This document shows positions 35,864 to 64,000 of a stretch of DNA of 64,000 nt, in pieces. The notes beneath the pieces are model-generated. The model did no database searches. It was not told the DNA's origin and saw only the letters and a program-made list of their open reading frames with translations. Both the position numbers and the translations under genes were made by a program. Origin of the DNA: Sphaerodactylus townsendi (lineage: Eukaryota); contig NC_059426.1 of assembly GCF_021028975.2 (NCBI RefSeq), positions 72,788,001-72,852,000 on the forward strand. The letters run 5' to 3'. The first letter of the stretch is position 1, and each line of letters starts with the position of its first letter.

Positions 35864-38800
35864 ATGGCGCCTCGGAGTGAGTAGGGGGGCTTGGAACCAT
35901 AAAGGACCGGTGCGGGGTGGGGAAGCCTGTTGGTGCTGGAAGGTCCTGCAACCGGAGGGTGGGGGGGTGGCCGAGGGCCTTTTAAGCCCGAGGGATGCCC
36001 ACCCCCCACGTCCTGGAGCAAGCTGACTGGGGCTTGGGGGAGGGGCCGTGGCGACTAGTGGCGCAGACTGGACCTAAAATGAACTGGGGAGTCACTGGCG
36101 ACGGAAGGAGCGGAGTAAGCCCAGCGGAGACCTCCTGCTGCCATGCATTTAACCACAGCGCCAGCTGCCTCTTTAGCACCCTTGCGGCAGTTTTGCTTCT
36201 TTTCACCCCCCATCAGCCGCTGTCCTGGAGTCAGAGCCGCGAAGTGTTCGGCCGGTGTGTTCCCTTTCCATAGCTTTGTAGTGATGGAGGAGGGTTTTTA
36301 ACTTTGCGTTAAGAATCGTGTGGTCTTTCAGCTGTGCTAAATTAGTTTGGAGCGTAGGTGAGTGGAGGTTGCCAGATCTGAGGTGTGCGTGGTTTGATGG
36401 ACCTGCTCACTGGTTGTCTGTGATTTTGTCCCCATTGTCCAAACCGATGAGCATATCATACAGCTGACTACCTCTGCGACGATATCTGTTACACAGGTTT
36501 TGCTGGGAAGGGGCTCAGAGAAGCTCATACTTCCCCTAACAATTGCTGTTAACTCCTTAGTGAGGCTTGGTTTCCACTTTGACAAACATAAACCACGTTT
36601 TATCACCTTTAAATGGGTCAGTTTTCTGATAACTGGGCTTTCAGTGCAATATAGCCAGCAAGTCTGTGTTGGGGGACCTGACCTTTTGGAGCCCGCAGAC
36701 TCATTTGGAATTCTGAAACTGCCCGGTGGGCTCAGCAACAAAACAGTTGACACAAAATGACTTCTGCAGGAGAACGACCCAGGCACAAAATGATGGCTGC
36801 CTGTTAACTTAGTACTACAGTGTAGATCAGGGGTGTTGAACTCATTTGTTATGAGGGCTGGATATGACATGTGACTTGCTTGAGCCAGGCCGGGGGTGGG
36901 TGGCACTGGTGGCCTAGACTGGCATCGGTGGGGAAGTGTCTACCTTCATCTGTCAAGCCTGCAATGGGCTCGCCAGCCCTGAATGGCACTGAGTGAAGTG
37001 GTTGATGCTGAGAGGGGCGGCTGCCTGAACTGGCGAGCCCACAGCAAGCTTGCCAGCCCAGATAAGCCCGGGGAGGAGGTTAGGGACAGGAGCACGGGGG
37101 GGGGGGGGCAGAATGGGGACAGAAGCACTTGGCAGCCACCAGAAAAGGTGTTGGTGGTTGCCATGTCCCCACAGGTACCCAAGCTGGGACTCTTGGTGGC
37201 ACAAAGAGAGTACATCCCATAAATGGTCTGGTTGTCTCCCCTAGATCGGCAGCTCTCTTCTACGCCTCTGGAGATTCTGCTGTTCCTCAATGGCTGGTAT
37301 TATGCCACGTATTTCTTGCTGGAGATCTTCATATTTGTCTATAAAGGTGAGTTTTTCTTGGCTGCAGCTGCAGACTGATGGAAAGGGGGCTTGGCGGGAA
37401 GATGTTTATCTTTTGTTTACCTTTTGACATTCTAAAGAAAGTAGAAATTAGTATTTTCTGTCTTATTCCATCCTTAGCTGCTGACTGTTTGAAGATTAAA
37501 GGGCTTTATAGAACTACTGAGTTTATTTAATACAGGACTCTTCTTTTTCAAGAAATGCAGTAGAGATGGACAGCTGCGTCTTTTAATCTTGATGCATGTT
37601 ACTATTTCTGTACACCCTAGGACTGCTGTTGCCGTATCCGTCTGCAAATCTGGCCTTGGACCTGGTTATGCTTTTCCTCTACCTTGGAATTGAAGTTGCT
37701 CGGATATTTTTTGGTGAATATCAAATTATCAGATGCCTCTGGGTGTGGTGTATTAAGCTGTTGGTGAACATCTGTGGTTGCATTTTAGCTGACACACATT
37801 TCCTGACATTCCTTATTCCATGTAGCTCACCAAGCAATCATCCCATACATTCTGCCCTCACCATTAATATATTCATGGGTGTCTTGGTGTTGTTGTTAAG
37901 CAGAGTAGAAATGTAATTGGTTCTTTTTCATTCTAGGTTCTGTTAGTCCTAAGTTTTTGAGTTGGGGAAGATGCCACAGATGAAATAGAGCTGAATGGGT
38001 AGCCATGCATCAGAAATACTTTTGTTGTAGTTTCTGATTTCTTTAGGCCTGATCTGAAGTTTAGCTATCTCTCCTGATCTGGGAAATGGTTAGAATTGCA
38101 GTATGAAAAGTTGCAAAATTCAGTTTCCTGCTCTTAATGGACAATAAATCCAAGCTGCTTCCAGAAAATCAGACTTCCCATCCTGTCTCCAAACAATGTG
38201 GCTTCTTTGCTTTGTATTTCTAAGGAAGGCCTAACGGCTTGACTGATTATGCTATTTGTGACAGGGTCAAAAGGGAACTTGTGTCAACGGAAAGTGCCAC
38301 TCTCCATCAGCTTGGCTCTAACCTTTCCAGCAGCTGTGATGGCAGCCTACTATCTTCTACTGCAGACCTACGCTCTACGCCTTGAGGCCATCCTCAACGC
38401 TATCCTGCTTCTTTTCTATGCGGTCGAGCTGTTTTTGGGAATTCTTACTCTGGCTTCTTTTTCCAGGTACCTTTTTTTTTTTGGTAGTTTAGGAAGTGAA
38501 TTTTCTGTTAATCATTTTTTTAAAAAAATATTACTATTGGCTTTCTGGTTTTCTAAACTGAAAAGCGTGAAAAATATTGGGTTTTTTCACACGCGTTCTG
38601 GGAGAGACCATGTATTGACAGAAGGGCTGAGGTACGTGTTTGAAAAGGATCAAAGAAGAAAATGGTGGAGGGATAGAGGTTTACTATGTGGAAAGGAGAA
38701 AATATCTCCATGGGCTAGGAAATTTAAAGGGGCTGAGACAGTGGAGGAGGAAGAAAGCACCGATATAATTGAAAATAGGGCTTAGGTACGTGTTTGACAA

Positions 38801-39668: not shown

Positions 39669-40101
39669 GGCTGTTTCTGCACAGGCGGAAAACAGCACCC
39701 TAGGGATGGTAAAAACACTGTCCCTGGGGTGCTGTTCGCACAGCAGGGCTGTGCTGGGCCTGCCCAAGTGGCATGAAGATGCCGCTTCCAAACCATGCTC
39801 CCCGAGCAAGGTTTTTCGAAAATGCCATCTTCGCGCCGCCGTTGGCCCCTCCGGTGTGTGCGAGGGACTTACCTTGCCTGCCTGTACAGCTCCAGGGAGC
39901 TGGAAAGGCACGGCCCCGGCGGTCAGAAGGCAGCATGGGCATGTCTTTTCAGCCACCCGGAGCTGCATAGGAAGGCAAGGTAAGTCCCTTGCACACACCC
40001 TGGGCAGCTCTGTGTGGAGCCGCCCCTGCGGGCAGCAGCAGCGTCGGAACTGCCCGCACAGTCCTGATGCTCCTGCTGCCTCTGACCATGCAGAAATGGC
40101 C
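39669..40101. mobile_element. MITE, probably PIF/Harbinger, between the TMEM216 and fascin-like 3' ends
   Basis: TIR ggctgtttctgca/tgcagaaatggcc, 3-bp TAA TSD, internal inverted repeat (gtgtgcgagggacttaccttgcct / aggcaaggtaagtcccttgcacac). Confidence 0.75.
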
Positions 40102-40376
40102 TAACTGTATGAGACTTAAACAGAAGAGAGCCCTGGTTGAGGTCAGGCCCAGCAGTTTGAGTTCTTTCACCACAAATCAGGTTATTTGAGTTGACTGTAT
40201 TTTTGAAAGTTCAGCCATCCAGCCATATGATCAAACAGCAATTGAGAATAAGGAAAAAGCCAGGAAGTAAAAAAGATGTCATTGAAAATATCAGAAACTA
40301 GGCAAAGTGTAACACTAGGGAACATTAGCAAGTGATCTCACACAGAAGTTTATTGATGGAAACATCAGGATGGTGC

Positions 40377-43300
40377 TCAGTAATGGAACAGTGTTGCACC
40401 AGCTGCATCTGAAGCCCCAGCCCATAACCGGCCTCCCATATCAGCCACAAAAAACTTGTTATTAGATGCTTTGATGATAATACAAGTGGAAGATGCAAAC
40501 TGGATGGTAAAATTGCTTGGTTGGTCACTGGTTACCATAACTTGCCCATCTTTATCCAGAGCCCAGTAGTTGCTGCCTACAGGTCAAATATCAGAGTTAG
40601 AAAGATATGTGACAGGCATTGTATAGAAACGTATAAGTTTTCAAAACAATTGTCTACTTCACCATTATCATTATATTATGCTACAAATGGCATTTATTTG
40701 GGATAGGATATTCAGTAGGACTTATTTAAAGGGACAGGAGGAAGAATATTAGTTTATTCTTAGCTAGGTTCAGGCTGTGTAGGGCCAGTGACACTAGAAG
40801 AGAAGGAAATATTGGCTTAATTGTAGGGTTACACTCACTCCACGGGAAGGGCTATGTAATTTTTTTGTGTAATCTGTTGGTTCCAACTGAAGGCAGTTCC
40901 TCTGCCCAGAGTTTGAACAGGAAACTTAAAATATCAACTTTTAACATATTTATGGGATACATAGCAGAAAAGGAAGCAGAAGGGAAACCCTTTTGGGGGG
41001 TATTATTTTATTTAATCTGCTATCTGTACTAGACAGGCAGTGTGATATAGTGGTTAAAAGTGGCAGGCCCAAATCTGGAGAACCAGGTTTGATTCCTCAG
41101 TGCTCTACATGAAACTTGCTGGGTGACCTTGGGCCAGTCACAGTTCTCTCAGAACTCCCTCACCCATGTAGAGGCAGGCAAACCACCTATGAATGTCTCT
41201 TGTCTTGAAAACCCTACAGGGTCACATTCCCAACTCAATGTAATTGCTACAAGGTATATGCTTGCTATATGTTACCACTGCCATTCTGGGGCATTCTTCC
41301 CTTGATCTTTATTTTATGGCTTCACACACTGAGTAGATTACTTGGCGTTTTTCCCTGACACTTTGGTGTTATGAGAACCGAAATTGTTTCCATTATTTCG
41401 TAGGGTTAGGATACCAGGTGGGTCTCTATCTGTTGCTGATCTTGGGGCCCCTCAGTTCCACACTAACTATTTCTCACAGTTCTTGGGAAGATGGGAGGGG
41501 GGACTAACATCAAAATAAAAGGAATAGCAAACTCCAGGTTCAGCAGAACTGGCTTTAGCAAGCTGGGGGCTTCAATGCCTATCAATAAACACTGCTGACT
41601 AACAATACAGAGTCAGTTTATTGCTTCAAGGTCCAAGACCTAACACTGAAGCAGTAGATATGTGCCCCACTGAAACTGGCATTTATTGTGATTTCTAACC
41701 AGAGTGGGCTTGCTGCTCATCAGGTTGAAACCAGGATATTTTCAGTGGAAGGAGTGGTGAACTCCACGAAAGAGTGGGATTTGAACATTCTTCTGATGAA
41801 CTCTATGACAGACATGTCCAGAGATGGTTTCTGTATAGGACAGTGTGATGTTCTGGACCCTGGTCAAAAGCATTAGTTTTGCCAACTTTTTGATGCAAAA
41901 GGGATGTATGGCTTCTTGTAAATAAAAACAAAATAATTGTTGGCCTTGGCTGTTGCTGATCATTCTCACATGAATTACTGTCTGATAGAGACAGCTTTTC
42001 ATTGTTCTTCCCCCAAGAGAGATGGCCAGATTTTCCTGCTGATGGGATGGAAGATGGAGATTCAGGACGTCCAGGTAAGATATACAAAGGCAAATGTGGG
42101 CCACTCAAGCAACCATGAAGATTCTTAGGGTCCAGAAAAGTCCAGCAAAAAGAACCATTCATGAAAGTGCTGGGAACCTAAAGTATCTCCTGAATGAAAA
42201 CACAGCAGCAGGTTTCCATCACATCAACTGAGAAAAGGAATTCCCCTTGAAGGAAAACCTCTGTGATAGTCCTCAGGGCTTCTATGTGAATTTTCCTTTT
42301 CCTAATTAGCTTGTTAAGTAGATGTCTGAGTTCTTAGATCATTCTCAATAAAGAAAAGGGGGCACCTGAGAACTTCTGTTCAAATAGCTGGAAGATGGCT
42401 GATGGTTTGGAGAATCCTGATATATTTATCTGCATTTCTGGACTTTAATCTGTTGGCTGGTCTTTAAAGCAGCATTGGCAGCAATAGACCAGATGTAGAA
42501 TGCTGAGGCCTTATGTACACTATACAGAGTAAGATCAGCTGCAGAAGGTGACAAGTGGCAACGGCTGATAAAGAGATCTGAAGCATGTGAAAGCTCTGAA
42601 CGGATCCTTGCTATGGTGCAAGGCAAGGGTATATAGATTTTTGCAGCTTTCTGATTCTACCTGGAAGTGGTTCTCCAGTGCAAGTAGGAGGTGCAAGCTT
42701 TCACAAAGATATTCTCCTCCACTGATGGAGAAGAACTTATTGGGTGCTGTCTTCTCCTATTTCAGGCACTTTGGGATAGAGGATCACCAGCCCTTTCCTG
42801 ATTCCCTCCCAATTACCCGCTTGTTCTCAGCCTTACCTTGCTCTAGCGCAAAAGGTTGCACCAGAAGTGCCCTCGCTTCCCCCGCAGAAAGCGAGAGGCA
42901 TTCGTGGGGCAAGAGGAAGCACTTTGGACAGGAAATCTTGGCCTGGTGCGCCTCCTTTCTCAGCACGCTGCAAAAAGGAAGTGCATTGGGGCAAGATGTC
43001 ACACCACATGTCAGAATGCCGGTAGGTAATTGGCCCCTTTGATACCTCAATCTGAGAATTAGTTAAATGTAAAGGAAAAATGTTGGTTATTAGGTACTTG
43101 TTTCTATCTACAGCAACAATCTAAGTGTTCTGTTCTAACTATCCTCTACTAGTAGTTGCTACACAGTTTGTAAGGATAATATCTTTCTCTTCACACAGAT
43201 AGTTTGGGAACCCCTGCCTTTATAAAGAAATTTGGGTCAGTCGGGATTCTCTCTTTCCCCTCCCTCACCCGAGTATACCAACCAATTTGGAAGTTGTAGT

Positions 43301-46300
43301 AGCCTTCTTCCATGAGCGACAGGCTGCTGGCAACATAACTGACGCAGTTTGCTTCGAGGCGCTTCATGCCAGAACACAGGCCCACATACCCAGCATTAGT
43401 GTGTAGCACCAGTAGTGGCCGGTTTACCAGCACCATCAGGAAATCTTCAATCTTACCTGCAAGTGCAAGACAATGTACAACCTTGACAATGTTCATCTGC
43501 TGCAGAGAGCAGGGCAAAGCAGATCTGGAAGGCTTAAACATGGTTCAGTTACCCTCCCTTTTTGCAAGACAGAAATGTTTTTCTAAGGGAAGTGCCAGTT
43601 TTAATGTTGGAATTTGGGAAAAGGCTGTGATTGCCCTGCAGTGAGGAACTGAATGGGATAGGGGACAATGTGTGCATTACTCTAGCTAGCATTTACAATA
43701 GCTTCCTCTAGATTCTTACACAGTTGAAGGTGCTAGTTTTGATCAACTGTGACTGATATCCCAAGCAACAGGTAGGCACAGAAAACTAGAGAAGTGCCTA
43801 ATAGATATCCAGAATTATGAAATTCCTCTGACTGCCCCTCCAATCATAGGCCATAACAGGGGAGGAGCACTTTGCAGCAGGAGAACCCACCCAGAGCTCT
43901 CCGGGGGTGGACGGTATAAAAGTCAAATAAAATAAAGAAATAAATAAATATGCTAAGAAAGCAGCGGGGAAAACCCACTGCAAAGCATACAGCCTTGCAG
44001 AAAACTGGAAGTGCATAAAAGCCCACATAGAAGCAATTTTAACCCCATGTTGTAGGCTGGCTGGCTGGCTGTCTGTCAGTGGCCAGCGTTGTGTCTAGGG
44101 AAGGACAGAGCTTTTGTAAGTCTCCTTTGTGCTAGCAGAGCTCAATGAAGCATGAATATGTTATTGTTAGTCCCAGTTTAAGGGGGGTGTATGTTCAAGA
44201 AATGTAAATAATTCATCTTGTTTGATGGCAGGATTCTACAGCTGTCAGTACTCATTTTACTCACCTCGGAAGGATGGAAGGCTGAGTCAATCTTGAGTCA
44301 GCTACCTGAAACCGACTTCTGACAGGAACTAACTCAGGTCATGAGCAGAGCTTGGACTGCAGTACTGCAGCAAGTGCCAGCTTTAAATTGAGAGAAGCCC
44401 CTCCCCATCTCCCACCCTCAGAAATCAATACAGAAATCAATGTTAGTGATGAGCTATTGGCTTAAGACAGTATTACTTTGAAATGGAATGCAAGGAAAAT
44501 TACTGAAGGATTTTTAGAGACTACAGTGTATTATGACGGCATGTATAAGAATGGCCTATGGCAGTGTCAAAAATATTATACACCTTGGCTGGAGGCCCCT
44601 AAGATTTGAAGGGCTTAGGCTTCAGCCAACTGAGCCTATAGGTAAATCCGGCAGTGACTGCAGCTTACTACTCTGTGCCACGAGGCACCAGTTGCTGGCT
44701 GAAAACGAAACATCCAAACTCTTGGACCTCTGACCTAGCACACAGTCTAAAGACTGTTTAAATGTCATTAAGAAGGGATAGCAATTTCTGCCCTGTGCCC
44801 CCTTCTCATAGCCTTCAAAAAAGTTGTACCTGGGCACCACCAGACATTGAGAAAGAACAGTCGTGGGAAGGAGATATTAGGTAGACATCAAGAAAACGTG
44901 AGTGCTCTTGTCTTTAAAATGTGCTGTTGGCCATTTCTACCTATTATTAGATTTTAAAAATGTATTTGTGTATAACTCTTCCCCATTTAAAGCATTAAGC
45001 TACTGCAACCTAGGAAGTGAAGTTCACTGGCTTCCTTCAATTAAGGCCAACAGAAAGGAGAGAAGAGCCCTTGTATACCAATTCTATGCCCTCCAAACTA
45101 TCTAAAACCACCTTCACATGTAGCAGTATGCCATTACTCCTCACACTCTGTACTCCAAGAACTACCAAGAGAAGGGAGAACTAAAGGTACAAAATTCCAG
45201 CACCCATGTCCTTATGGAATCTTCAAAGGCAGGGAGCTAATTTGTTTTCCTATAGCATTTTGATTGGGACTATAACAACCCTGGTGGTATAACAACCCTG
45301 GGCGCCCATGACAGCTATTGGTACCGATTCATGCTTGCTTGTTTCAGCATGTCCTGTGCTCACAAGAGAATTTCTCTTCCACCTTGTACCTGCAGCTTTA
45401 GGAATTGCCATGAGCTGTCCATTGGGCCGCATAGACACGTATTTGTCACCTATAGTCAGCATCACCTTCTGGTCCTGATACTTGAGTTCAAACCAGACAT
45501 TCCTATCTTTTTGTTTGCTGCTAACAATACAGTCGTTGGGACCCTGCAAAGAGGAAAACAATGGGTGTAAAAGCCTCCCTTTGTTCTGTATCTCACCTTG
45601 TCTACTGTAAATTTCCTACATGGTTCCTCCAGTTCTGAGAACATTCTCATTTTTTACTGTAGAGTACTTGGTTCTGCATCAGGGTTACAAAAGAACCTGA
45701 CTGTGGTCAATTCAACACTCTCGTCTGCCCAAAGTTTAGGGACGGCTCTTGATTCTGAGTGGGCCAGGCTGGCCAGACACCTGTTTCACTTAAGACTGTG
45801 GAACTACATTGGACTCAGTCTTGTTAAAATAACAAGACAGTATTCTGTCCCTTGGCCTCTGGCTGTCTGGGTAGTTAAGGGGACTTGTGGCAACACTTCA
45901 CATCTTTTGTTTGTCTTGCTCAACACATCAATTTTAAACAGGGCCTTGGCCTTAAGGTCTTTTGACAGTGCCATTTATCAGATAGATTGCTTATGACAGC
46001 TTGTCCCTGACTGTCAACAGAACTTTGAGGCTACATAATGGTAGAAGATTGAAAAACATATTTTGAGAAGAATTCCACAGAGATCTAGTGGCATCTTATA
46101 TCTTTTTTAAAATGTGGTCTGTTTAATACAGGGCCCTCTTGTTGGGTATGTCTTATAATTTGAAATTCAAATATAAAAAGTTTAAAAAGACTAACAAAAT
46201 TTATTCCACTTATGGGTGCTGTGTGGTTTCCGGGCTGTATGGCCGTGTTCTAGCAGCATTCTCTCCTGACGTTTCGCCTGCATCTGTGGCTCTTTGTAAT

Positions 46301-49300
46301 GCTCCCAATACCCACTCATCTGTTAGTTGTAACTCTAAGTATTAATAACTGATCCTCCAACTCACAAAAGAAAAAAATGTTAAATTTTAAAGTAATCACT
46401 GGGCTCCTGTTTTATTATTCTTTGGAAAAAAAACCTGCCTACATGACCCTTCTCCACATCTCCAACCTCTTGTAGGAATAGTTTAAGAAGTCTCTCAATG
46501 AGGATCACCTGCTGGTCAAAGATTATCCATCAACAGGAATGTTCACATGAAACCATCATTCTCTTAACTTACAGGGCACAGAAACGCAATTATTAGTTTT
46601 ATGCCTGGTCAGGAAGAAAAAAGGACACCTGTTCCTTTGTCCTAATATGTGTAGGTGAGAGACAGTTTAGAGTAGCTGCTCTTGCCTAGTTCAAGTCATT
46701 CCTCACAACAAGCAGACTAACTCACCAAGGCCATATATGTGCCACAGTAGCCACGGAAGCAGACTCTCTTTGTATCATCATCAAACAGTACTTGGAAGAT
46801 CTCTGTGTTCCCGACAGCCATGGCATTGGCATACAGGTCAGCACCTGGAGGGTCAGCAGAACAAAAGGCTCAAAGAGGCAGCCCCAGATCGAAGTAGTTT
46901 CACATGTCATTGCTGCCCCTTGCTGGCCAAAGTCAGACTTACTGCAGTGCTCATAGTCATGTAGAATGGAATAGAAGTTTATATTTTACATGTTACTATT
47001 GTCAAGATCAGGGGTAGGGCCATGCAATTGGCCATGCTGGTAGGGGCTGATGGGAATTGTAGTTCCTGAACATCTGGAGAGCCGCAGGTTCCCTACCCCT
47101 GGTCAAGATATTTATGAGACCATCCATAGAGAGGTTTAAGTGAACACAGCAGATCTGACCTTGGATTTCAAATCCTTGTGGACTAAATGCCATTCCCACC
47201 AGTAATGAATGTGAATACTAGCAGAAAAGCCGACTGTGCTAAGTAATACAGTGGGCTCTAGACAGGGCAGGGGACTGGGTAGCCCCCCCTCCCCCGCCCC
47301 GGCCCTTGCTTCTTGGCAGGCTGGTGCCAGGCCAGGTTGGAGGGCAGTCTTTCCCACCCTGCCTGGCAGGAGTTGGAATGCAAGGAAGCAGAAGTGATCC
47401 TTGTGTGCAGAGCCGAACCAGCTAGGATCACGTTCTCTCCCTCCCCCGCAGGATCTCCCTCTCCCTCGCAGGATCATGTTCTCTCCCTCCCCCACTTGTT
47501 TCCCAATCGCGGCAGGAGTTGGGAAGCAAAGAAGGGAAAGCAATTCTATGTGCAGAACTGAACTAGCTAGCTAGCTAGGCTCTGTTCACAGGATCGCGTT
47601 TTCTCCCCTATCTCCTTGCTTCTCAGCCCCAACAGAAGTTGGGAAGAAAGGAAGGGGAAACGATTGGGATCTTCCCCCGCCTCTCCTGTCCCAGAGGTGT
47701 GTGGGGGTGGGGGGAGATAGAGTGGGTGTTTGGTAAGAATGGAATGTGTGGTGATTGGGTAGTATTCAGTGGTGAGATTCAAATAATTTAACAACCAGTC
47801 CCGGTGGTGGGATTTAAATTATTTAACAACTGTTTGTTAACAAGCACCATTTTAACAACCAGTTCTGCCGAAGTGGTGCAAACCTGCTGAATCCCACCAT
47901 GGGTAGTACTGAGTCATCGCCACATGTTCCATTCTTAACAAATCATATCTTATAATGACAAAAACTGGTCTATGGCTGTAAATAAATGATGATATTGTGA
48001 GTGGCTAGTTGATTTTCTCTTAGTCTCATTTTTCCATTGATGTATGAGGAATAAAAGCTCAATGAGAAGAAGTCTAAAACGTGTACAGCGCAATCCTGAT
48101 CTGGGAGGTAGCCAGGGACAACGCTGTGGCAAGTCAGAGGAAACAAAAATCCTCCCCAGCTACCTTAAGTCTGTCTTCCTTAAGCTTCCTTAAGTCTGTC
48201 TTCCCCATCGCCAGTGTTCTCAGGGCCAAAGCCCTTTGGAAGCCAACTAATCTCACCCCAGCCTCTGGGCACGCCCTAGGGCAGGGGTCTGCAACTTGTG
48301 GTTCTCCAGATGTTCATGGACTACAAATCCCATCAGCCCCTGCCAGCATGGCCTTTAGCTATTCTGCCCCCCACCCAATCCTTTAGCTATTCTGCCCCCC
48401 ACCAAATCTAGATTGGACTGCCTGTACACTTTCCCATCACATTAGGGCAGACTGGCTCCTAACTTACTGGGAAAGTTCCTGGTGGGATGCTGCCCTGGAA
48501 AGTCACTGGGGGACAGCAACAAGCAAAACCAACCCAAGTAGCCACATCAGTTAGATCCTTCATCAGCAACTGTGTTTGGTGTTAGCTCACCAGCAGTTTC
48601 TTTCTTTACCAGAACTGGCTGGCAGCAATGCAGCAACTAACACTGGTGGCCAGGTCTGCACTGAGTGGGATCTGCAGTTTTGGCATGCAACGCTGCCAGA
48701 GACACTGTGCCTGGAATTTTTTCTTAGGGTTTTCTGCCAATCCTTTTTACACTTCATTAACATAGCTACTAAAGCACAAAAAATGAAAGAAGTGTATACA
48801 GTATTAACACAAAGACAACCCTCTTAAAATATTATACTCATACACAAACACACTTATTAGAATCATAGAGTTGGAGGAGACCACAAGTCCAGCCCCCTGC
48901 CAAGCAGGAACACACAATCCAAGCACTCCCAACATATGTTCATCCAGCCTCTGTTTAAAAACTTCCAAAGAAGGAGACTCCACCACTCTCTGAGGCAGCG
49001 AATTCCACTGTAGAACAGCCTTGACAGTCAGAAAGTTCTTCTTAATGTTTAAGTGGAATCTCTTTTCCTGCACCTTGAACCCATTACTCCATATCCTAGT
49101 CTTTGAGGCAGCAGAAAAGTCATCGATAAAATATTGAATAGCACTGGGTCCAGGACAGAACCCTGTGGCACTCCACTACTCACTTCTCTCCTGGATGAAA
49201 ATGAGCCATTGATGAGCACTCTTTGCTTTCGGCCGGTCAACCAATTACAAATCCACCTAACTTGACATAACTGTAACTTGTATGTGAGTACACATTACTT

Positions 49301-52300
49301 GGCATAACTGTAACCTGTATGTGGATACACGACACACAACCCCTTTTTGATGACATACCTCAGAAAAAACTAGCGTCACATTTGAGATAATAGTGTATTT
49401 TGTTACAGAAAATGGAGATACAAATTCAACCAGAAGTTCAGGGACCACTGAGCTTGGCTTGCTCTGGACTATTAACTTCGCAGTCCACACCTGCATGGTA
49501 CCAGCTCAGCTGATACATGCCCCAAATCTTCACAAACACAATACAGCACAGGCAGTGTCGACTTTTTGATCTCACCTGGCCTACAGCAGATGAACTTGTT
49601 GGTAGAAGAGGAGCGCAGTGACACCTGGGCAGGGCTGGCTTCTATGCTGAAAAGTTCATCTCGTCCAGGCTTGTCCATCTTTGCTGTTTTCATGATACCC
49701 TCACGTGTAGACAAGTATCTTCCTCCTTCATCCCGCAGGGCCACCAAACCATTGTTCAGTTCCAGGGAATACAGAGTTTCTGGGGTGACATCTGGCACCA
49801 GTGAGCCATCAGGAGCCAACAGTTTGCCACTCCCAGTCCTCAATCCATACTTCTTCACTGAAGACAAAGGCAGGAGAGGCAATGTGAGAGAACAGGCACT
49901 TACTCCCAGAAAACAGTTTTCAAAGAAATGCCCACAAAGTAACATGATGCCCAATCGTCACTTCACTGTAGTTTTAAAGCAGAGATGCCCTGGAACTGCC
50001 CTATACCTAAACACTTCCTGGCACCCATACTGGTTCTTTTCTCCTGTAACCTTTCCTGTAGTCAGTGATGTAGCTATAGATTTTTTATGGGGTGGGTTCG
50101 GGAGCGTGGCCAACCCCCACCCACCCCTGGGACGTGGCCACACCTCCCCAAGCTCTGCCCCCCGCCTCAGTGCTTATAAAAGCAGCTCTCTGAGGCCGGG
50201 GACTGCAGTCTCTTCTCCCCGGAGGGGAGGGAAGAAGGGACTGCCAGCTGGGAGCCCAGCCGGCGGGGTAGGGGGCAGCAGAGCTTTGGACGTGTAATGG
50301 GCAGGGGGTTGAACCCAGGAAACTCCCCCCCCCCTTTACCTACATCATTACCTGTACTGTTCCTCTCATCCACTGTCTCTGGAATCCTTTCTAAGACAGT
50401 GCATTAGGTCTTAGTCTCTTGTTTTAATGCATTACTTGAAATTCCCTATTCTTCCAAATAATTCCAGAGGGATAGGCATGGTAGTCTGTTTTGTTTATGC
50501 AAAGAATCCTACCAGCCTTTCTGCTTACTGTTGCACAATTCCCTTCCTCACAGCAGTGTTCTATCCCTGATCTCTGTCTATGTGACTCCTATGCTATGAC
50601 CCCCCAGCATGGCCTTTTTGGTGGTCAAAATGTTACCCTTTCCGCTCACTTTTCTGACCTGAACAATCACAGTTCTTCAACAATCGAATTTCAAAGAAAG
50701 AGTCCAGTGCAAAACAGTTGAGTTGAGATTTTTTCCAAAGTTTTTTTACTACTTCTGCCCCTAAGGAGACCTAGGAGCCTTATCTCATTATACTATGACT
50801 ATTTCATGAAACCTGTGATCCTTAACAGATGTTACCTAGCTTACCAATACTGGTAGACTGCCTCTGTATTTTGTCCTGATCAGACTTCCGTTTTACGTCA
50901 TTGTGTTTTGCGGTGTACTTACTTAAAACATTAATTAGCTGTCATTCTACCTTGTTGCACTCAAGGTGGCTTACAATAGTAACAAAACAATGGTTATGAA
51001 ACACACAAAAGATAACAGTTTGAAATAGCAGTCAGGACTGCCAGTAAAAGGAAACTGAGAATCAGTCAAATGCAACCCTAAACGAAACTGACTTCAGCTG
51101 CCTCCTGAAGATCAAACATGAGGGGGTCAGGCTTTACTGCATTTCATGATTCTGTGATCCTGCTGCTTGTTTTCTCAAACCTATAAGAACTTAACAGAAA
51201 GTGAGGATTCAGTCAGAGAACCTGAAGAAGTAGGACTGCAGAAGCTTATGATTAATAAAATGTTTACTGTTTCCAGTGCCAAAAGACTCCTGTTGATATT
51301 AGGTACTTGTGAAATGGGAGTTCATCTTTGTTCTGTCCCACTGGGGTGCTAAACTTTGTATTAGTCTTCATAGAGCCTATTTTTTTGCTATTGATTTGGG
51401 GCAGATCATGACATAAAAGCTAGACATTCCATCCCCAGTCCAGATACAGCTGGGAACAACACAAATGCAGCAGTTGAGAACTCCCGTTAGTTCTGAATGT
51501 CGACACATTGCTTCATTGGTACTATAGCGGGAGACTGCAATGAATGCCTCACACTTGAATGTGCTTCAGAATACAGATGTGTGTTGACGTTCCATATCAT
51601 GCATTTGGTTCTACTCCAGGTTGGATCCTGTGCAAAAGATCATCATGTACAACTTAGTGTGTGTGTGTGAAATGACACAATAATTGCCAATCCCCCCGCC
51701 CCATGACATCCCCCTATATCAGGGGTGGCCAGCCTATGGCGCACCAGATGTTCATGGATTACAATTCCCATCAGCCCCTGCCAGCATGGTGCTGGTAGGG
51801 GCTGTTGGGAATTGTAGTACATGAACATCTGGAGTGCCATAGGTTGGTCACCGACCCCTGCCCTACATGCTGCTTTTGGGAGTCCTCTGTTCCCCAGAAA
51901 CAGCATTTGTGAGGGCAGTTTGGTCTGCTGTAGGATTACAGAAGTTGCTTTTCTATATATGGATCTTTTTGACAGGATCATGATTTGCAGTTAAACACTG
52001 ACTATCAAGTTACCCAGGCTACTTAGTGCTGTTGAATACACTGACATCTGTGCCATCCACAGAGATTCCTGGGTAAACAGAATTTGAATTCACCTGGTAT
52101 GGGGCAGAAAAATTTCCTTCTTTCACCATTGTTTGTCTCCGACTGAAGACCTATTGAGGAGATGCAAATGACTCAAGCTTAACTTATTTACATATCAAAA
52201 ACATGGACTGATGGCTTGAAATGTGCCCAGATACACTAGCAACAGGTCTTTAATAATTTGGTTTCATGTATACACTATTAAGTTATCTGCCCTCCTCCCA

Positions 52301-55214
52301 CCTTGATACTACCATGCTGCTTGCACACTGAATTCCTCATGCACAGCAATGTGTACAGCTCACTGGTATATGCCAGGATCTCTAGACTGGATGTTATTCC
52401 CACAGAGAAGAATCATTCGAGTAAAGCTAAAGGCGACCCTTGGGAAAAAAATAACAGATGTAGTGAGAAAGGCTCTGCCTAACACAAGGTCTTCTGTGTC
52501 TCTGGAATGTCAGCCTGCCACTTCTGGTTTTCATATTCTGACAGTCAGCCCCATAGTTTGAGAAAAATGGAACTAAGGGCTTATTCAGTCATTTCTGTGA
52601 GTAACAGAGGCAACAGTGAGTACTGCAGCCATAGCTCTAATCCTGTATGGGCAGTCAAATGAGGTGCACTTGCATTGGGCTTCAAAAATTCATTTTAACT
52701 TGGCTGTTTTATTTCAGAAAGGGTGAGATTAGCATTGTCCGGAAATAGTGGGAATATTGGTGCAACATGAGAGATGAAGGGAAGGCCTGAAAGATGGGGG
52801 GGAATTAGCAAAAATTGCCACCTCCAATCAATACTGCTCAAAAAAGCCAACACACCTCCTAAAAATGTGTGTCAATCATCTCGGAAATCACATCATTTGC
52901 AATAATATTGAAGGCTTTCTGTACAAGCAAAGCAAGTCCCAAAAGTATTTCAGCATTTATGTGAAACAATTGCAATGACAGAATTTTCCATTGCACTCAG
53001 ACTTTTTCTAAACAGCTGGAAACCATCGAGCCTAGGAGTCTGCAACCTGCGGCTCTCCAGATGTTCATGGACTACAATCCCCATCAGCCCCTGCCAGCAT
53101 GGCAAAGCCTCATTAAGAAGCTCTACCACAATCTCTCTCTCTCTCTCTCACACACACAAAATCCAAAGATCGCCTTTGACACATCTTTTCACATGTATTG
53201 CATTTGCTATCTACTTACCCGTTGCTGTAGAGATAAATATCACAGGTTGAGGCCTAGGAAAATGTGACTCCTTTGCAATTGAAGCACAATCTTGATGATG
53301 GTTGTGCGGACTACATGCAGCAAATAGTGAGAAATGCATATTTAATATGCAGCAAACCATTTGGGAAGAGCAGCAAAAAATGGAAACTACAAGCATGCCA
53401 GTTTGGCAGAATATAGCTAAAGATGCTACTACTAGATGTTAGCCGAAATCCATTTCAAATTGCAAGATACCTTGCTTTCAAATGTATGTAGCCCAATTTG
53501 TTTTAGATGGATTGGGGTCTTTCCATTTTGTTTTCAGAGTTTTATTGATTCTTTCAGAGTTAAAGGATGGGTATAACTCAGTTAAACGCAGCATGTTTTG
53601 CCTTGGGATTCTGTCAGCATTCAGTCAGGGTTGCTTATTATCTTAATTAAGCCATCTTTACCTGCTGAACATTTCTGAATTTCTACTCAACTGTTTTTCA
53701 GAATGGGATTTGACTGCATGAGCATGATTAACTAATCCTTGACATCCTACACAAAGGAAGAAAATTGGGAAAATTTCTCCACCCACCTCTGAAATCATAG
53801 TAGACGGTGATGACCGATTCAGCACCCCAGGGCATGTCACGGTCACAGCGCAGTGCCCCAGCTTTTTCATCACAGCGCACATAGCGCTTCCTGTTGGGGC
53901 TGTATATGGCGACATTGGGGTGCACTGCCAGGTGCAGCGTCCATTTTTCAGTTTCGGTGGCAGCCTGGGCAAAGCAGGTGACATTATCCTCTGCCCCACC
54001 CAGGTAGCGCTTAGACTGCTCATTCTGCAGAGACACCTGACAGGAAGGAGTGGTGTGTAGTCAGTCTTTTCACCCAAGATGGGAAGACCAGAAATATTCT
54101 CATTAAAAGTGAAGGTGAAACTGCCAGGTACCCGTTGGCTTTATAACCATCATATCACCCAACTACTTCCTTACACCTACTTAAGCTGCTATGATTGCAT
54201 CTTTCCTATCATGCCACATTTATCAGTTCCAAGACTACACAGAAAACAGTGAGTACAACACTAGCTTAGGAGACACCAGTGGGCTACGAGAGGAAGAAGC
54301 AGCTCTCAATCTTTCATATATCATGCCTCACCAATCACTCCATCAAAAAACATGGGTCCCATCATTTTAGAAAAAAGACGTTTTTCCCCACAGAGGACAC
54401 ATACATGTTTACAGGTATTCTGTCACTATTACTTTCAAGACAAAAAGTGATAGATGGAGTATAGGAAAATTCCCCGGCCACAACACCTAAAAGTCTAGTC
54501 ACTAGTACAGGGGAGTCATAGAAGATATTCCTGCCTGCCCCTTTACCCTCTAATAATTCTCAAACTCAGCGCTCTCCAGAAAGCAATAGAGGAAGATATA
54601 CTTACAGGGTATATATATATTTAGATAAGAGCCTAACAATGGGAGGAACATAAGAGGTGCCCTGCTGGATCAAACCTGTGGTCCAACATCCTGTTTCATA
54701 GACACTGACCAGTTCCCTGGATGTTCAAATAGGGCAAAGAGGGCCTTTCTGATGTTTCTTCCTAGTACTGACATTCAGAGGTTAAATGTCTACAAGTGGA
54801 ATGGCTAACAAATTCTACCTAAAGAACATTTTACCACCACCCTAATCCACCTTCTTTCTGAACTGCAACTATTGCTATTACTAGACATACAACAGTTGTG
54901 AATGACCACACCTTGCCATCTGGATACTGCTGTAGGAGGAAGACAGTCTGAGGTCCTGGACGTTCCTGATCACATGTGATTTTGCCATTAGCATCAGCTG
55001 CCAAATAGCGTTTCAGGGCACTGAGCAGGTGAAGTTTCTGGCCAGCCCCCTCTCCTGGGCCAGCTGCCCCAGCTCCTTGCGGGGCCAAAAATTGCAGTAT
55101 CCACACCTGGCGGGGCTTCAGCTGCAAGCCTGTGGCTGTCACCTGGAAACGAAAAGCTTCTGCGGTCAGGTATTTGTTGGCAGCATTAATAAGGCCAAAT
55201 TCCAGTGAAGCCAT
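40377..55214 (-). CDS. Fascin-family actin-bundling protein (four beta-trefoils), 493 aa, 7 coding exons; not assignable to FSCN1/2/3 by position
   Basis: Exons 55214-54912 (MASLEFGLINAANKYLTAEAFRFQV...YPDGK), 54036-53787 (VSLQNEQSKRYLGGAEDNVTCFAQ...HLAVHP...RKRY...DRDMPWG), 49857-49576 (KKYGLRT...VALRDEGGRYL...KPGRDELFSIEASPAQVSL), 46844-46726 (ADLYANA...EIFQV...KRVCFR...YMAL), 45543-45390 (GPND...FELKY...NGQLMA), 43456-43283 (EDFLMVLVNRPLLVL...LEAN...GYYNFQI) and 40576-40377 (SNYWALDKDG...IKASNNKFFVAD...ATLFHY*). All GT-AG, phases 0/1/1/0/1/1 match, 1482 nt with no internal stops; AATAAA 22 nt after the stop (40349-40354). Confidence 0.95.
41031..41225 (+). mobile_element. Older tRNA-derived SINE (Squam3-like)
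   Basis: A-box-like tgatatagtgg, B-box ggtttgattcc, gctgggtgaccttgggccagtca core. Confidence 0.7.
44246..44372 (-). mobile_element. Sauria SINE fragment
   Basis: gtactcattttactcacctcggaaggatggaaggctgagtcaa...gcagtactgcagc is the recognisable Sauria SINE body. Confidence 0.75.
46212..46290. mobile_element. Penelope-like element terminal fragment
   Basis: tgtgtggtttccgggctgtatggccgtgttctagcagcattctctcctgacgtttcgcctgcatctgtggc, typical of a squamate PLE end. Confidence 0.6.
47009..47101. mobile_element. Short hAT (Charlie-like) MITE
   Basis: TIR CAGGGGTAGGG/CCCTACCCCTG, exact 8-bp TSD gtcaagat; family members at 48282, 51720, 53033 and 59963. Confidence 0.85.
48857..49258 (-). mobile_element. 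CR1 LINE 3' end joined to an RT fragment (internally deleted)
   Basis: RFHLNIKKNFLTVKAVLQWNSLPQRVVESPSLEVFKQRLD and QRVLINGSFSS...GVPQGSVLDPVLFNI; tatgattct tail. Confidence 0.92.
50063..50350. mobile_element. Non-autonomous hAT MITE related to the 33754-35206 element
   Basis: TIR gtgatgtag/ctacatcat; TSD cctgtagt/cctgtact. Confidence 0.75.
51720..51860. mobile_element. Palindromic hAT MITE
   Basis: CAGGGG...CCCCTG termini, TSD ccctatat/ccctacat, hairpin body. Confidence 0.85.
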
Positions 55215-55259: not shown

Positions 55260-55400
55260 AGCTGGGCCCATTTAAGAACTACCATTTAAGAACTACAACT
55301 GCTATCCTCAAGATCACAATGGGTGCCTGGCAACCAAGTAGATCCACCATCTCAGCATTAAGCTCCACCCACAAGAACCAGTTATTGCCTAGGCAGCATT
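55260..55400 (-). promoter_or_regulatory. Putative non-CpG promoter of the fascin-like gene with X-box-like motifs
   Basis: GGTGCCTGGCAAC (55322-55334) and ATTGCCTAGGCAGC (55384-55397) resemble RFX X-boxes; duplicated TATA-like TTAAAT (minus strand) within a 14-bp tandem repeat at 55268-55295. Confidence 0.5.
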
Positions 55401-61220: not shown

Positions 61221-62801
61221 TCAGTGATGTCGATCCCTTTCTCTGTCCCTGTCTCTGTGTCTCTCATGTTCCCGGCTCCTTTCCTGAAAATAGTCCTCAT
61301 GCCGATCTTCATTATGGATTGCATCTCGGTGCCGCCTGCTGCTCTCACGGGATCGACTGGGTGACCTATCCCGAGACCGGTGTCTTTTTCTGGAAGATAA
61401 ACCAGATATCTAGATTTCTGAAAAAATACACTTTGTGTACACACATGTCTTCCTTTGAACAAGAACATATTTCTATCTGGCTGGATGTAAACCAGGAAGG
61501 GAACCAGAGTGTTCTTTGATGCTGGAAAATTACCAGCTAGATTCCTTCAAGGATCCTACCTAGTAAAGCTTTACCTGGAGGAACTGCTGCTGCTGCCACC
61601 GCCCATACTGTAGGATTTGGCTCTGATGCCATGGAGACAATCCTTAAGTGAAGAGACAAGGACTCTGCAGCGCTCATCATTCGCTACACGGGACTGCTTG
61701 ATCACAACGATGGCTGTAAGCAGAGTCTCAATGGCATCATTAAAATCCCCTGTGACATCAAAGAGAAAGGCAGAATGATCAGGCTAAAGCAACAGGCTAA
61801 AAGCAGAAGAAAGTGGCAGAAGCCAGCTGTGGTTTACCTGCACTGGCACCAGACACAGCTTTGGAAATGGCACTGCTGGAAATTGCTCGGTTCCGGTTCA
61901 TGATTTCTTCAAACTCAGCTTCACTGACAGGGGGTGGCAATGGGCCTAGTTCTCGGCTGAAGAACACACATACATGTTCACAACTCAAAGGCAGAGAACA
62001 AATCACTTCAAGCAGCATTATAATATTCTTGTTCACATGTGTAGCAATTAAGGTATTTAGAAAAAAATATCCACCATTCAGCTAACCAAATTATCTTCCT
62101 GCCCAATGTAGGTGTCAACCAGTTTATTAAGGGCCATGTCTGAAGCTGACAGACTATATTCTAGCTAGAAAGGTCCTTGGTGCTATGCAGGGCATCAGTA
62201 GCACAATTAACAAGTGGTCATTCTTTTAATTCCCAGCCAGCAAAACACAAAACTTGGTACACATTCAAGTAGACAAAGCCCCATTGTAAATTAGGCCTAA
62301 AGCCTCACAAATCAACAGATATAAATAGGATTCACACTGCCCCCTCTTCAAGTAGTTCTTCTCAAATCCCCAAACATAAGACTTATGCTCACCTGCTATG
62401 GTTATATGGGGCTGAAGCCTTACTGTAGGCATCTGGTGGAGGGCCCATTGCTGCATTTGGTGGGGGGAAGAAGGCTGGGTTGAGGTGCAAAGCAGGTGGC
62501 ACTGCCCCTGGAGGTGGCACCGTTAGGTGTGGGGGGAGTCGAGGAGGAGGGGGCATTAGGTGCTGGTAGTGGATGCCTGGTGGGGGAGGTGGGACTCCAA
62601 AACTTGAAGAAATTTGTGGAGGTGGAGGCATGGGTGGAGGTGGTAGTCCCATGAGAGGGAGAGCAGAAGGAGGGCGGTTGAAGAAAGGCAAAACAGAAGG
62701 AGGCTTCTCAATCCGTGGTGGTGGTACCGCATTCTCTGTTGGAGTGGCTCGGCCATCTACTGAGTCTGAGGAATCCCTTGAGTGAGCCCTCGGAGGCACA
62801 C
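61221..62801 (-). CDS. CPSF7: Cleavage and polyadenylation specificity factor 7 (CFIm59), last four coding exons; 5' part lies beyond the window
   Basis: Exons 62801-62393 ([12 protein letters not shown]...proline-rich...[11 protein letters not shown]), 61956-61838 ([30 protein letters not shown]), 61749-61575 ([41 protein letters not shown]) and 61389-61221 (RS/RD domain ...RDRERDRHH*). Confidence 0.97.
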
Positions 62802-64000
62802 CTGTCAGACATCATAGAAGAGGAAAAGCACTGAACACTGAAGAGGTAGGGAAGGCACGGGAGAACCAGCCTGTTTCCTGACACTACATCCCCCCCCGCC
62901 CCTCTCTTTCCAGGCTCACACATAACCTCAACTTTTGCCCAAAGAAACTCCCATCTCTTGCAGTGTTAACAAAGGGTGGATTTTGCTGGCACATGAACAG
63001 AGGTCTTGGGCCTGACTTGGGTAAGTGTCAAGAAAGATCAGGTTATCTTCCTGCTATCATGGGAAATCAGTGTGGCATTATAACTGGTAGAGGTATTTAC
63101 AGTGATCTTGTGAGGTAGATCAACATGATTTCCATTTTGCAGACAGGAATTGAGAGCTTTTACCTCATCTAGAGTCACTTAGTGAATTCTTAGCTGAGGC
63201 AAAGTTTATTTACAGGATAACAGGATCAACAATATAAATAAGAATGTAATATTCTTTTTTATGTAAAAAACTTAACCAAAAAGAACTTCCACCCTTACTC
63301 ACAAAACCAATTACTGAGCATTGACTTTAAGATAAAATACTTCAAAAATGTATTTCATATGCTATTTTAGACCATGTCCCATTCTTGGGGGCTCAATAAA
63401 AATCACCCAAAAAGGTTCAAACCAGAAAGATCAAATCCTGTCACAGGTAATGTGCTGAACTCAGTTTAAGGAACAGTCAAAGAACCTCAAGAGGAATCAG
63501 AAAAGTTTCCTGACTGATGATAGGCAGTAGAAAGGAAGACAGGCAGTAGAAAGATCAGGAGAATACTGAACAACTCACTCCTAGATACAATGGCAACAAA
63601 AATAGAGATTTTCAATAAGTGAAGCCAGCATGCATCCTCAAAAAGGATACAAAGACAATTGGTCACACTGTGGTAGACAACAAGAAAAAATGTTTTTGGT
63701 TCTATTATAACACTAAATGGCATACCTGGCCAGAAAAACCCCGTTCCTGTGTACAGTTACATACAATAACTTTCAGCACTGCCTATTAGGGAATAACAGA
63801 ATCAAAAAGGATTGGTCTAGGATGGTTGAAAGCCAGAAAGACAGACATGAATCAAAATCTCATAGTTTTGACCTCCATCTTACCAAAGCTAATGAGAGTG
63901 AAACCTATGGAACAAATTCAACTAATTTGTGCCACAACGTATGTGAACTGAACTGGGCACATTTAAAATTATGTATGTCTATGAACTAATATTAAAGGTT

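Follow-up and report, generated by a model that had tools for sequence, protein, structure and literature searches.

A transcribed fascin gene of an ancient 'fascin-like' lineage beside TMEM216 and a CPSF6/7-type gene in the gecko Sphaerodactylus townsendi

Reviews count three vertebrate fascins (PMC7698196, PMC8616296). FSCN1 has five exons, and roles have been assigned to its residues Ser39, which protein kinase C uses to turn fascin-1 off, and K241-K250 (PMC8616296). FSCN3, the testis fascin, has been described from mammals (PMC7698196, PMC8616296), is 29% identical to fascin-1 (PMC7698196) and in human lies at the ARF5-PAX4 locus (PMC3759438). Here we describe a fascin gene in a 64,000-nt stretch of the genome of the gecko Sphaerodactylus townsendi (contig NC_059426.1, positions 72,788,001 to 72,852,000). 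This whole stretch is called the window, and positions below are counted from its first letter. A sequence-only reading had proposed an intact extra fascin here, between TMEM216 and CPSF7. We conclude that the gene is very probably a working member of the fascin family, spliced, polyadenylated and restricted in its expression, and that it belongs to an ancient 'fascin-like' lineage that has long stood beside CPSF7 and TMEM216; its actin-bundling activity we infer. A literature search found no study on a TMEM216-linked or fourth fascin.

The gene comprises seven minus-strand exons running from 55214 down to 40377, with coordinates taken directly from the DNA. They are as follows, X5 being one of the three RNA runs treated below.

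Exon 1, 54912 to 55214, minus strand: ATG at 55214; 101 codons; beta-trefoil 1; Pfam Fascin match, E=5.7e-9.
Exon 2, 53787 to 54036, minus strand: 250 nt, ending in phase 1; equal length in alligator, frog, sturgeon and leopard gecko.
Exon 3, 49576 to 49857, minus strand: 282 nt; Pfam Fascin match, E=8e-9; length kept in all mapped orthologues.
Exon 4, 46726 to 46844, minus strand: 119 nt; X5 read continuations from 45544 match the plus strand from 46727.
Exon 5, 45390 to 45543, minus strand: 154 nt; X5 depth about 50-100 per orientation in its bins.
Exon 6, 43283 to 43456, minus strand: 174 nt; X5 coverage and an exact joint to exon 7.
Exon 7, 40337 to 40576, minus strand: coding from 40576 to 40380; TGA at 40379-40377; AATAAA at 40354-40349; transcript end at about 40337.

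Together the exons amount to 1482 nt, or 493 codons and the TGA, with no internal stop, and each of the six introns runs from GT to AG with a pyrimidine-rich acceptor. The exon reading thus bears out the proposed in-phase splice of seven exons to an uninterrupted protein of 493 residues. The coordinates first given for the exons at 46726-46844 and 40377-40576 proved exact, every fascin motif quoted in the sequence-only reading was found in the model translation, and since the gene carries introns it is, as argued there, no simple retrocopy. An in-frame stop lies 11 codons 5' of the ATG. An alternative donor/acceptor pair at the border of exons 1 and 2 would add three residues; orthologue proteins agree with the chosen model. 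The Pfam Fascin family (PF06268) matched five of the six exon open reading frames (ORFs) tested, and exon 1 matched its orthologues at 62-88% identity (HMMER). Database searches used exon 1 or orthologous database proteins as queries, while the joined 493-residue model was used for frame checks, local alignment, trees and the ratio of nonsynonymous to synonymous divergence (dN/dS).

A protein of this species is already deposited in UniProt (A0ACB8G1X5, 415 aa) and is 100% identical to residues 1-370 of our model. It then reads past the donor of exon 5 into intron 5 (45250-45389, minus strand) and ends there, so that exons 6 and 7 are missing. The deposited model is therefore truncated, and it is wrong after residue 370.

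Three RNA runs carrying the species label (X5, X6 and X7) were mapped on 39900-45650, a region that covers exons 5-7; the share of the run that was read was 6% for X5 and 19-24% for X6 and X7. In the bins holding exons 5, 6 and 7 the depth of X5 was about 45-100 reads per orientation against about 0.1-5 in unique intron sequence, so that exon depth was about 20-100 times intron depth. The joint between exons 7 and 6, from 40575 to 43282 (CT..AC, which is GT..AG on the minus strand), was crossed by 227 X5 reads with 51 start positions. At 45544, 172 X5 reads continued into the end of exon 4 and support the 4/5 junction. A check of junctions against RNA, proposed with the sequence-only reading, was therefore positive for the 6/7 and 4/5 joints, while exons 1-3 rest on orthologue proteins. 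Read starts and ends piled up at 40337, 12 nt beyond the AATAAA, and the 3' untranslated region (UTR) is therefore only about 40 nt. In the part of X6 and X7 that was read, no reads lay on fascin exons 5-7. Expression of the gene is strong but restricted and, given its strength in X5 and absence from the other two runs, therefore tissue-restricted.

Reads from all three runs also fell on high-copy repeats at 41052-41627 and 44124-44699 (introns 5 and 6), where the DNA word depth is in the thousands to millions, and they continued into unlike sequence. These reads are transcribed copies from elsewhere and not from the fascin gene. The introns also carry LINE-like ORFs; an RVT_1 domain matches a similar ORF elsewhere in the window.

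Orthologue coding sequences were cut from the fetched loci through exact protein-to-DNA matching. Compared with the leopard gecko (Eublepharis), dN/dS was 0.18-0.22 (dN=0.048, dS=0.22-0.27), which confirms the purifying selection suspected from the open frames; deeper pairs gave 0.11-0.35 with dS saturated. Selection on the gene is purifying, and looser than expected for a housekeeping fascin. One could suppose instead that the locus is a decaying or silent relic whose open frames have been preserved by chance, as the genome's own annotation, which ends after exon 5, might suggest. Seven phased exons without a stop, strong spliced expression in X5, a dN/dS near 0.2 and the RNA variants all speak against it: both fixed differences from X5 listed in exon 7 are synonymous (66 further differences lie outside the listing). 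We regard the relic as refuted by the spliced expression and the dN/dS, and give it practically no credence. That the gene is intact, as first claimed, is borne out by its stop-free phased exons and its transcription.

The gene is flanked by two others:

TMEM216-type gene, last coding exon within an ORF, 38249 to 38785, plus strand: Pfam Transmemb_17, E=6.5e-14; downstream of the fascin gene and convergent with it.
CPSF6/7-type gene, 3' coding exons, 61224 to 62811, minus strand: upstream of the fascin gene and on the same strand; RSLD_CPSF6, E=1.4e-22 and 1.5e-11.

The ORF of the former contains the end of the Transmemb_17 domain. In the latter, the RSLD-domain exons lie at 61574-62081 (minus strand), between Pro-rich and Arg/Ser-rich exons, and we took this gene as CPSF7 because of its synteny with TMEM216 and TMEM138. 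With these matches in its flanks, the fascin gene lies between TMEM216 and CPSF7, as had been stated. Elsewhere in the window there is a run of 173 N (6901-7073).

The same neighbourhood was found in distant vertebrates. In Alligator, TMEM216 lies just downstream and convergent, with TMEM138 and a cytochrome b561 gene beyond it; in Eublepharis it is likewise just downstream and convergent, with TMEM138 next. In the frog Ascaphus TMEM216 is again downstream and convergent, after one unnamed gene, and TMEM138 was not found after it within the fetched locus. In the sawfish Pristis the end of a CPSF6/7-type gene lies 8 kb upstream of the fascin gene, with both genes on one strand, as they are in the gecko window. 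No neighbour gene was found within 10 kb of the fascin gene of Heterodontus, and the sturgeon contig ends near the gene. Since frog, reptiles and sawfish share the locus, its position is older than the separation of cartilaginous from bony vertebrates. The intervening gene of Ascaphus (L002:16357-20057) encodes 275 aa with no Pfam match.

Exon 1 was searched with HMMER against 1.8 billion cluster representatives, and the closest matches were six fragments, followed by full-length proteins. Orthologues listed by NCBI and UniProt come from squamates, turtles, alligator, two basal frogs, coelacanth, sturgeon, sharks, rays and chimaera. NCBI labels them 'fascin-like' in more than 30 species, UniProt 'Fascin-like domain-containing protein', and the chimaera (Callorhinchus) member J3SI32 was named 'fascin-3' by its depositors. 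Identity to our model (BLASTP/alignment) is 87-91% in geckos, 75-83% in other squamates, 52-60% in turtles and Alligator, 48% in Ascaphus and 41-46% in the group of sturgeon, sharks and rays. The second frog, Discoglossus, falls in the fascin-like clade, as do the coelacanth and Callorhinchus members. The 'fascin-like' LOC genes (for example Anolis XP_016851051.1, Heteronotia 'fascin-like isoform X2' and Alligator 'fascin') are the same orthologous gene, with exon plan and neighbours like those of the gecko gene; they are automatic predictions without a gene symbol. The gene is thus not new to databases: it is already predicted, unnamed, in many genomes. In birds, mammals and teleosts no orthologue was found, in a word-limited search that is not proof of absence.

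The Alligator model (582 aa) has an 84-aa N-terminal extension (L001:10001-10252) that overlaps the promoter block described below, with the conserved Met at L001:10253; the extension is probably an annotation artefact. Sharks and rays have a second copy of the TMEM216-linked fascin, and Carcharodon and Pristiophorus possess both. In the tree this second-copy clade has a long stem (0.37). The copy in the skate Amblyraja radiata is intronless (L005:10001-11464), its 1464 nt directly encoding a 487-aa protein, and looks like an old, expressed-looking retrogene.

The maximum-likelihood tree (39 rows, LG+C20+F+G4) unites the fascin-like lineage with a support of 100/100 on a stem of about 0.9-1.0 substitutions per site. 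A FSCN2 clade of bird, crocodile and turtles has 100/100 and a FSCN1-type group of frogs and teleosts 99/98; the gecko gene lies outside both clades, in agreement with the earlier proposal that it is neither FSCN1 nor FSCN2. Within the lineage the sauropsids are basal, contrary to the species tree. We read this placement as a rate artefact because sauropsids share the locus with frog and sawfish, and it is a warning for placing FSCN3, which is even faster. Two metagenome 'hypothetical proteins', P0018 and P0207, had served as mammalian FSCN1 in earlier quick trees and in the identity alignment. Their first ~280 residues resemble mammalian FSCN1 and the rest is out of frame; being frameshifted after about residue 280, they were dropped from the final tree. 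They are probably mammalian, possibly human, host contamination.

The sequence-only reading had left open an ancient or a reptile-specific origin. Orthologues reaching to sharks at the same locus establish the former, and orthologues from sharks to frogs in that position do not agree with the latter. That FSCN1 or FSCN2 was duplicated recently, in reptiles only, has nothing more in its favour than that the gene sits in a reptile window. It is contradicted by the orthologues in sharks, chimaera, sturgeon, coelacanth and frogs, by a tree that excludes FSCN1 and FSCN2, by an identity of only 35% to turtle FSCN2 and by synteny preserved beyond reptiles. Distant orthologues, synteny and tree together refute such a duplicate, and we consider it exceedingly improbable.

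Intron positions set the lineage apart in the same way. On a common alignment its introns are at 191.0, 293.1, 389.1, 436.0, 490.1 and 548.1, those of turtle FSCN2 at 389.1, 449.2, 490.1 and 547.1, and those of amphioxus fascin at 389.1, 448.2, 502.2 and 547.1. Introns 293.1 and 436.0 of the lineage are absent from both turtle FSCN2 and amphioxus fascin, and 191.0 is present in its bony vertebrates while the sawfish gene lacks it. Where FSCN2 and amphioxus fascin have one undivided first exon, the lineage has two extra introns. Its exons of 250, 282 and 174 nt keep their length unchanged from sturgeon to gecko. By its place in the clade, its introns 191.0, 293.1 and 436.0 and its CPSF7 and TMEM216 neighbours, the gecko gene belongs to the fascin-like lineage.

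The encoded protein has the make-up of a fascin. It contains four tandem beta-trefoils in 493 aa, as FSCN1 does, and orthologues P0153 and P0163 each show four Fascin stretches in Pfam. A profile of the fascin-like clade matched solved fascin-1 end to end (positions 4-496, E=5e-139). Most core motifs are kept, and the lysine-rich loop (K241, K244, K247 and K250 of FSCN1) is conserved, reading K, K, K, R in the gecko model. The segment of actin-binding site 1 retains a partly basic character, with Ser39 replaced by Gln. At this position squamates have Gln, turtles and alligator Val, and frog and sturgeon Ser, while Ile also occurs in the lineage; the equivalent of FSCN1 Ser274 is Cys. In sauropsid members, beta-trefoil 1 contains a Gly/Ala-rich insert of 11 residues (model residues 47-57; window 55042-55074, minus strand), which is absent from frog, sturgeon and shark members.

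Identity of the gecko model to FSCN1/FSCN2-type proteins is 31-35%, and to FSCN1 it is put at about 31-37%. FSCN1 differs from the gecko gene in falling in a separate clade and in its locus, the gecko locus not being the ACTB one, and compared with the FSCN2/amphioxus counterpart the gecko gene has two extra introns and one that is shifted. With FSCN2, the retinal and hair-cell fascin, it has fold, length and tissue restriction in common, but turtle FSCN2 is 35% identical to the model and FSCN2 has five exons against seven. Turtle FSCN2 adjoins a FANCAA-domain gene, taken as FAAP100, and reptiles therefore carry FSCN2 as well. With its separate clade and its neighbours of CPSF6/7 and TMEM216 type, the gecko gene groups with neither FSCN1 nor FSCN2.

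The relation to FSCN3 is harder to judge. Like the gecko gene, FSCN3 is a divergent, tissue-restricted fascin outside the FSCN1/FSCN2 pair, and the two may be the same gene; they differ in locus. FSCN3 has seven exons. It has lost motifs that the gecko protein keeps, and it keeps an ancestral Trp in trefoil 1 and 'RG' after the NRP motif, positions at which all members of the fascin-like clade are derived. The searches brought out no mammalian FSCN3: there was no FSCN3 among the 128 matches of the exon-1 HMMER search, a region search with the Anolis orthologue gave squamates only, a profile search with 14 clade members gave no mammal protein, and a library of solved structures gave fascin-1 only. 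In a protein atlas a 'fascin-3' cluster scored 0.96 against 0.97 for 'Fascin' clusters. The locus is of the CPSF7-TMEM216 type in gecko, alligator, frog and sawfish, not the ARF5-PAX4 position of FSCN3; relocation in mammals would explain this difference.

The gecko gene may be a separate fourth gene or the form that testis fascin FSCN3 takes outside mammals, and we lean slightly towards the latter. Vertebrates would then have three fascin lineages, and FSCN3 would have left an ancestral CPSF7-TMEM216 locus for ARF5/PAX4 in the mammalian stem and evolved fast thereafter. The distributions of the two genes are complementary, in that, of the major jawed-vertebrate groups searched, only mammals, birds and teleosts yielded no member of the lineage, and a single relocation requires fewer events than five or more independent losses of FSCN3. 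Other points in the same direction are the name given to the Callorhinchus protein, the division of the single first exon of FSCN2 and amphioxus by two extra introns, and a restricted expression combined with a very short 3' UTR, which is typical of testis genes. On the other side, neither the NCBI nor the Ensembl pipeline calls these genes FSCN3, and the ancestral residues of FSCN3, set against the derived clade, would put FSCN3 outside the clade crown. A GCC1-ARF5-FSCN3-PAX4 block has moreover been noted in unspecified 'other vertebrate genomes' (PMC3759438). With all of this weighed, we give orthology with FSCN3 not quite an even chance.

A fourth fascin was what the sequence-only reading had inferred. 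A true fourth paralogue, sister to FSCN3 and derived from the early vertebrate genome duplications, would account for the clade's distinctness (100/100, with a long stem) and for an old, stable locus unlike those of FSCN1, FSCN2 and FSCN3. The clade also keeps the canonical motifs far better than FSCN3 as described, with its low identity to fascin-1 (PMC7698196). Such a gene would survive today in cartilaginous fishes, sturgeon, coelacanth, basal frogs and non-avian reptiles, and mammals, birds, teleosts and most frogs would have lost it. This history, however, requires a separate loss of FSCN3 in at least five lineages, no species has been shown to carry both genes, and the gaps in distribution come from the word-limited search. 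We hold it only a little less likely than orthology with FSCN3. We can propose only tentatively, then, that jawed vertebrates had four ancestral fascins, the unrecognised fourth being an RFX-controlled, restricted bundler beside the ciliary genes TMEM216 and TMEM138 that was lost independently in mammals, birds and teleosts and gave rise to an intronless retrogene, seen in a skate.

The suggestion of RFX control comes from a conserved block upstream of the gene. This block and a candidate alternative exon are the remaining features of the locus:

Candidate promoter block with an X-box-like (RFX-type) motif, 55316 to 55336, minus strand: about 110-120 nt upstream of the ATG.
Candidate alternative cassette exon, 52094 to 52150, minus strand: 57 nt in intron 2, with AG/GT flanks, in phase, adding 19 aa.

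The 21-mer at 55316-55336 is identical in Alligator and has one change in Eublepharis. Ascaphus has a perfect GTNRCC-N-RGYAAC site and Acipenser a match with one mismatch, and in all species compared the X-box-like sites lie 84-120 nt before the conserved Met. By our own estimate chance would give about 0.2 such matches per 600 nt on both strands, and the argument therefore is the shared position. We consider the block a putative RFX-responsive element. A second, weaker X-box-like site lies at 55384-55396 (minus strand), about 180 nt upstream of the ATG. RFX factors are drivers of ciliary genes and of genes of spermiogenesis (PMC4498915). In the testis of Rfx2 knockout mice at P30, Fscn3 is lower by about two-fold, but it is not listed as a target in chromatin immunoprecipitation, so that this link is weak. 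As for the cassette exon, its translation agrees at 17 of 18 residues with the additional exon in the Eublepharis model, and longer NCBI isoforms of Python, Erythrolamprus, Lacerta and Euleptes contain the insert too; it looks to be an alternative exon that has been conserved, in this gecko a candidate one.

The lineage very probably split from the FSCN1/FSCN2 stock before the divergence of sharks and bony vertebrates and has since stayed beside CPSF7 and TMEM216. In the gecko its product would bundle actin filaments as other fascins do, and would work without the protein-kinase-C switch at Ser39. The conserved RFX-type motif in the promoter may turn the gene on in a restricted cell type, for which our guess is spermatids or ciliated cells because of that motif, the short 3' UTR and the restricted expression.

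Several points weigh against this picture of a working, restricted fascin. Support for exons 1-3 comes from orthologue proteins only, and the 5/6 junction is not among the joints listed. X5, although it carries the same species label, has fixed differences from the window and could derive from a different population. Squamates and alligator show one mismatch in the X-box-like motif. In the protein, the equivalents of both Ser39 and Ser274 are changed, and the argument for actin bundling is likeness to known fascins. Finally, the tissue behind X5 is given as a code, and the expressing cell type is a guess.

The result concerns the history of the fascin family and not a new mechanism. For Sphaerodactylus it corrects a truncated gene model, and the gecko protein offers for comparison a natural fascin without the Ser39 switch. 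For the family there are two outcomes. One is that a whole lineage of fascins escaped notice because it is missing from mammals, birds, zebrafish and Xenopus. The other is that the age of testis fascin FSCN3 has been greatly underestimated and that outside mammals the gene has a well-conserved form of canonical appearance. Each of the two alters the reading of fascin evolution and of the FSCN3 sequence.

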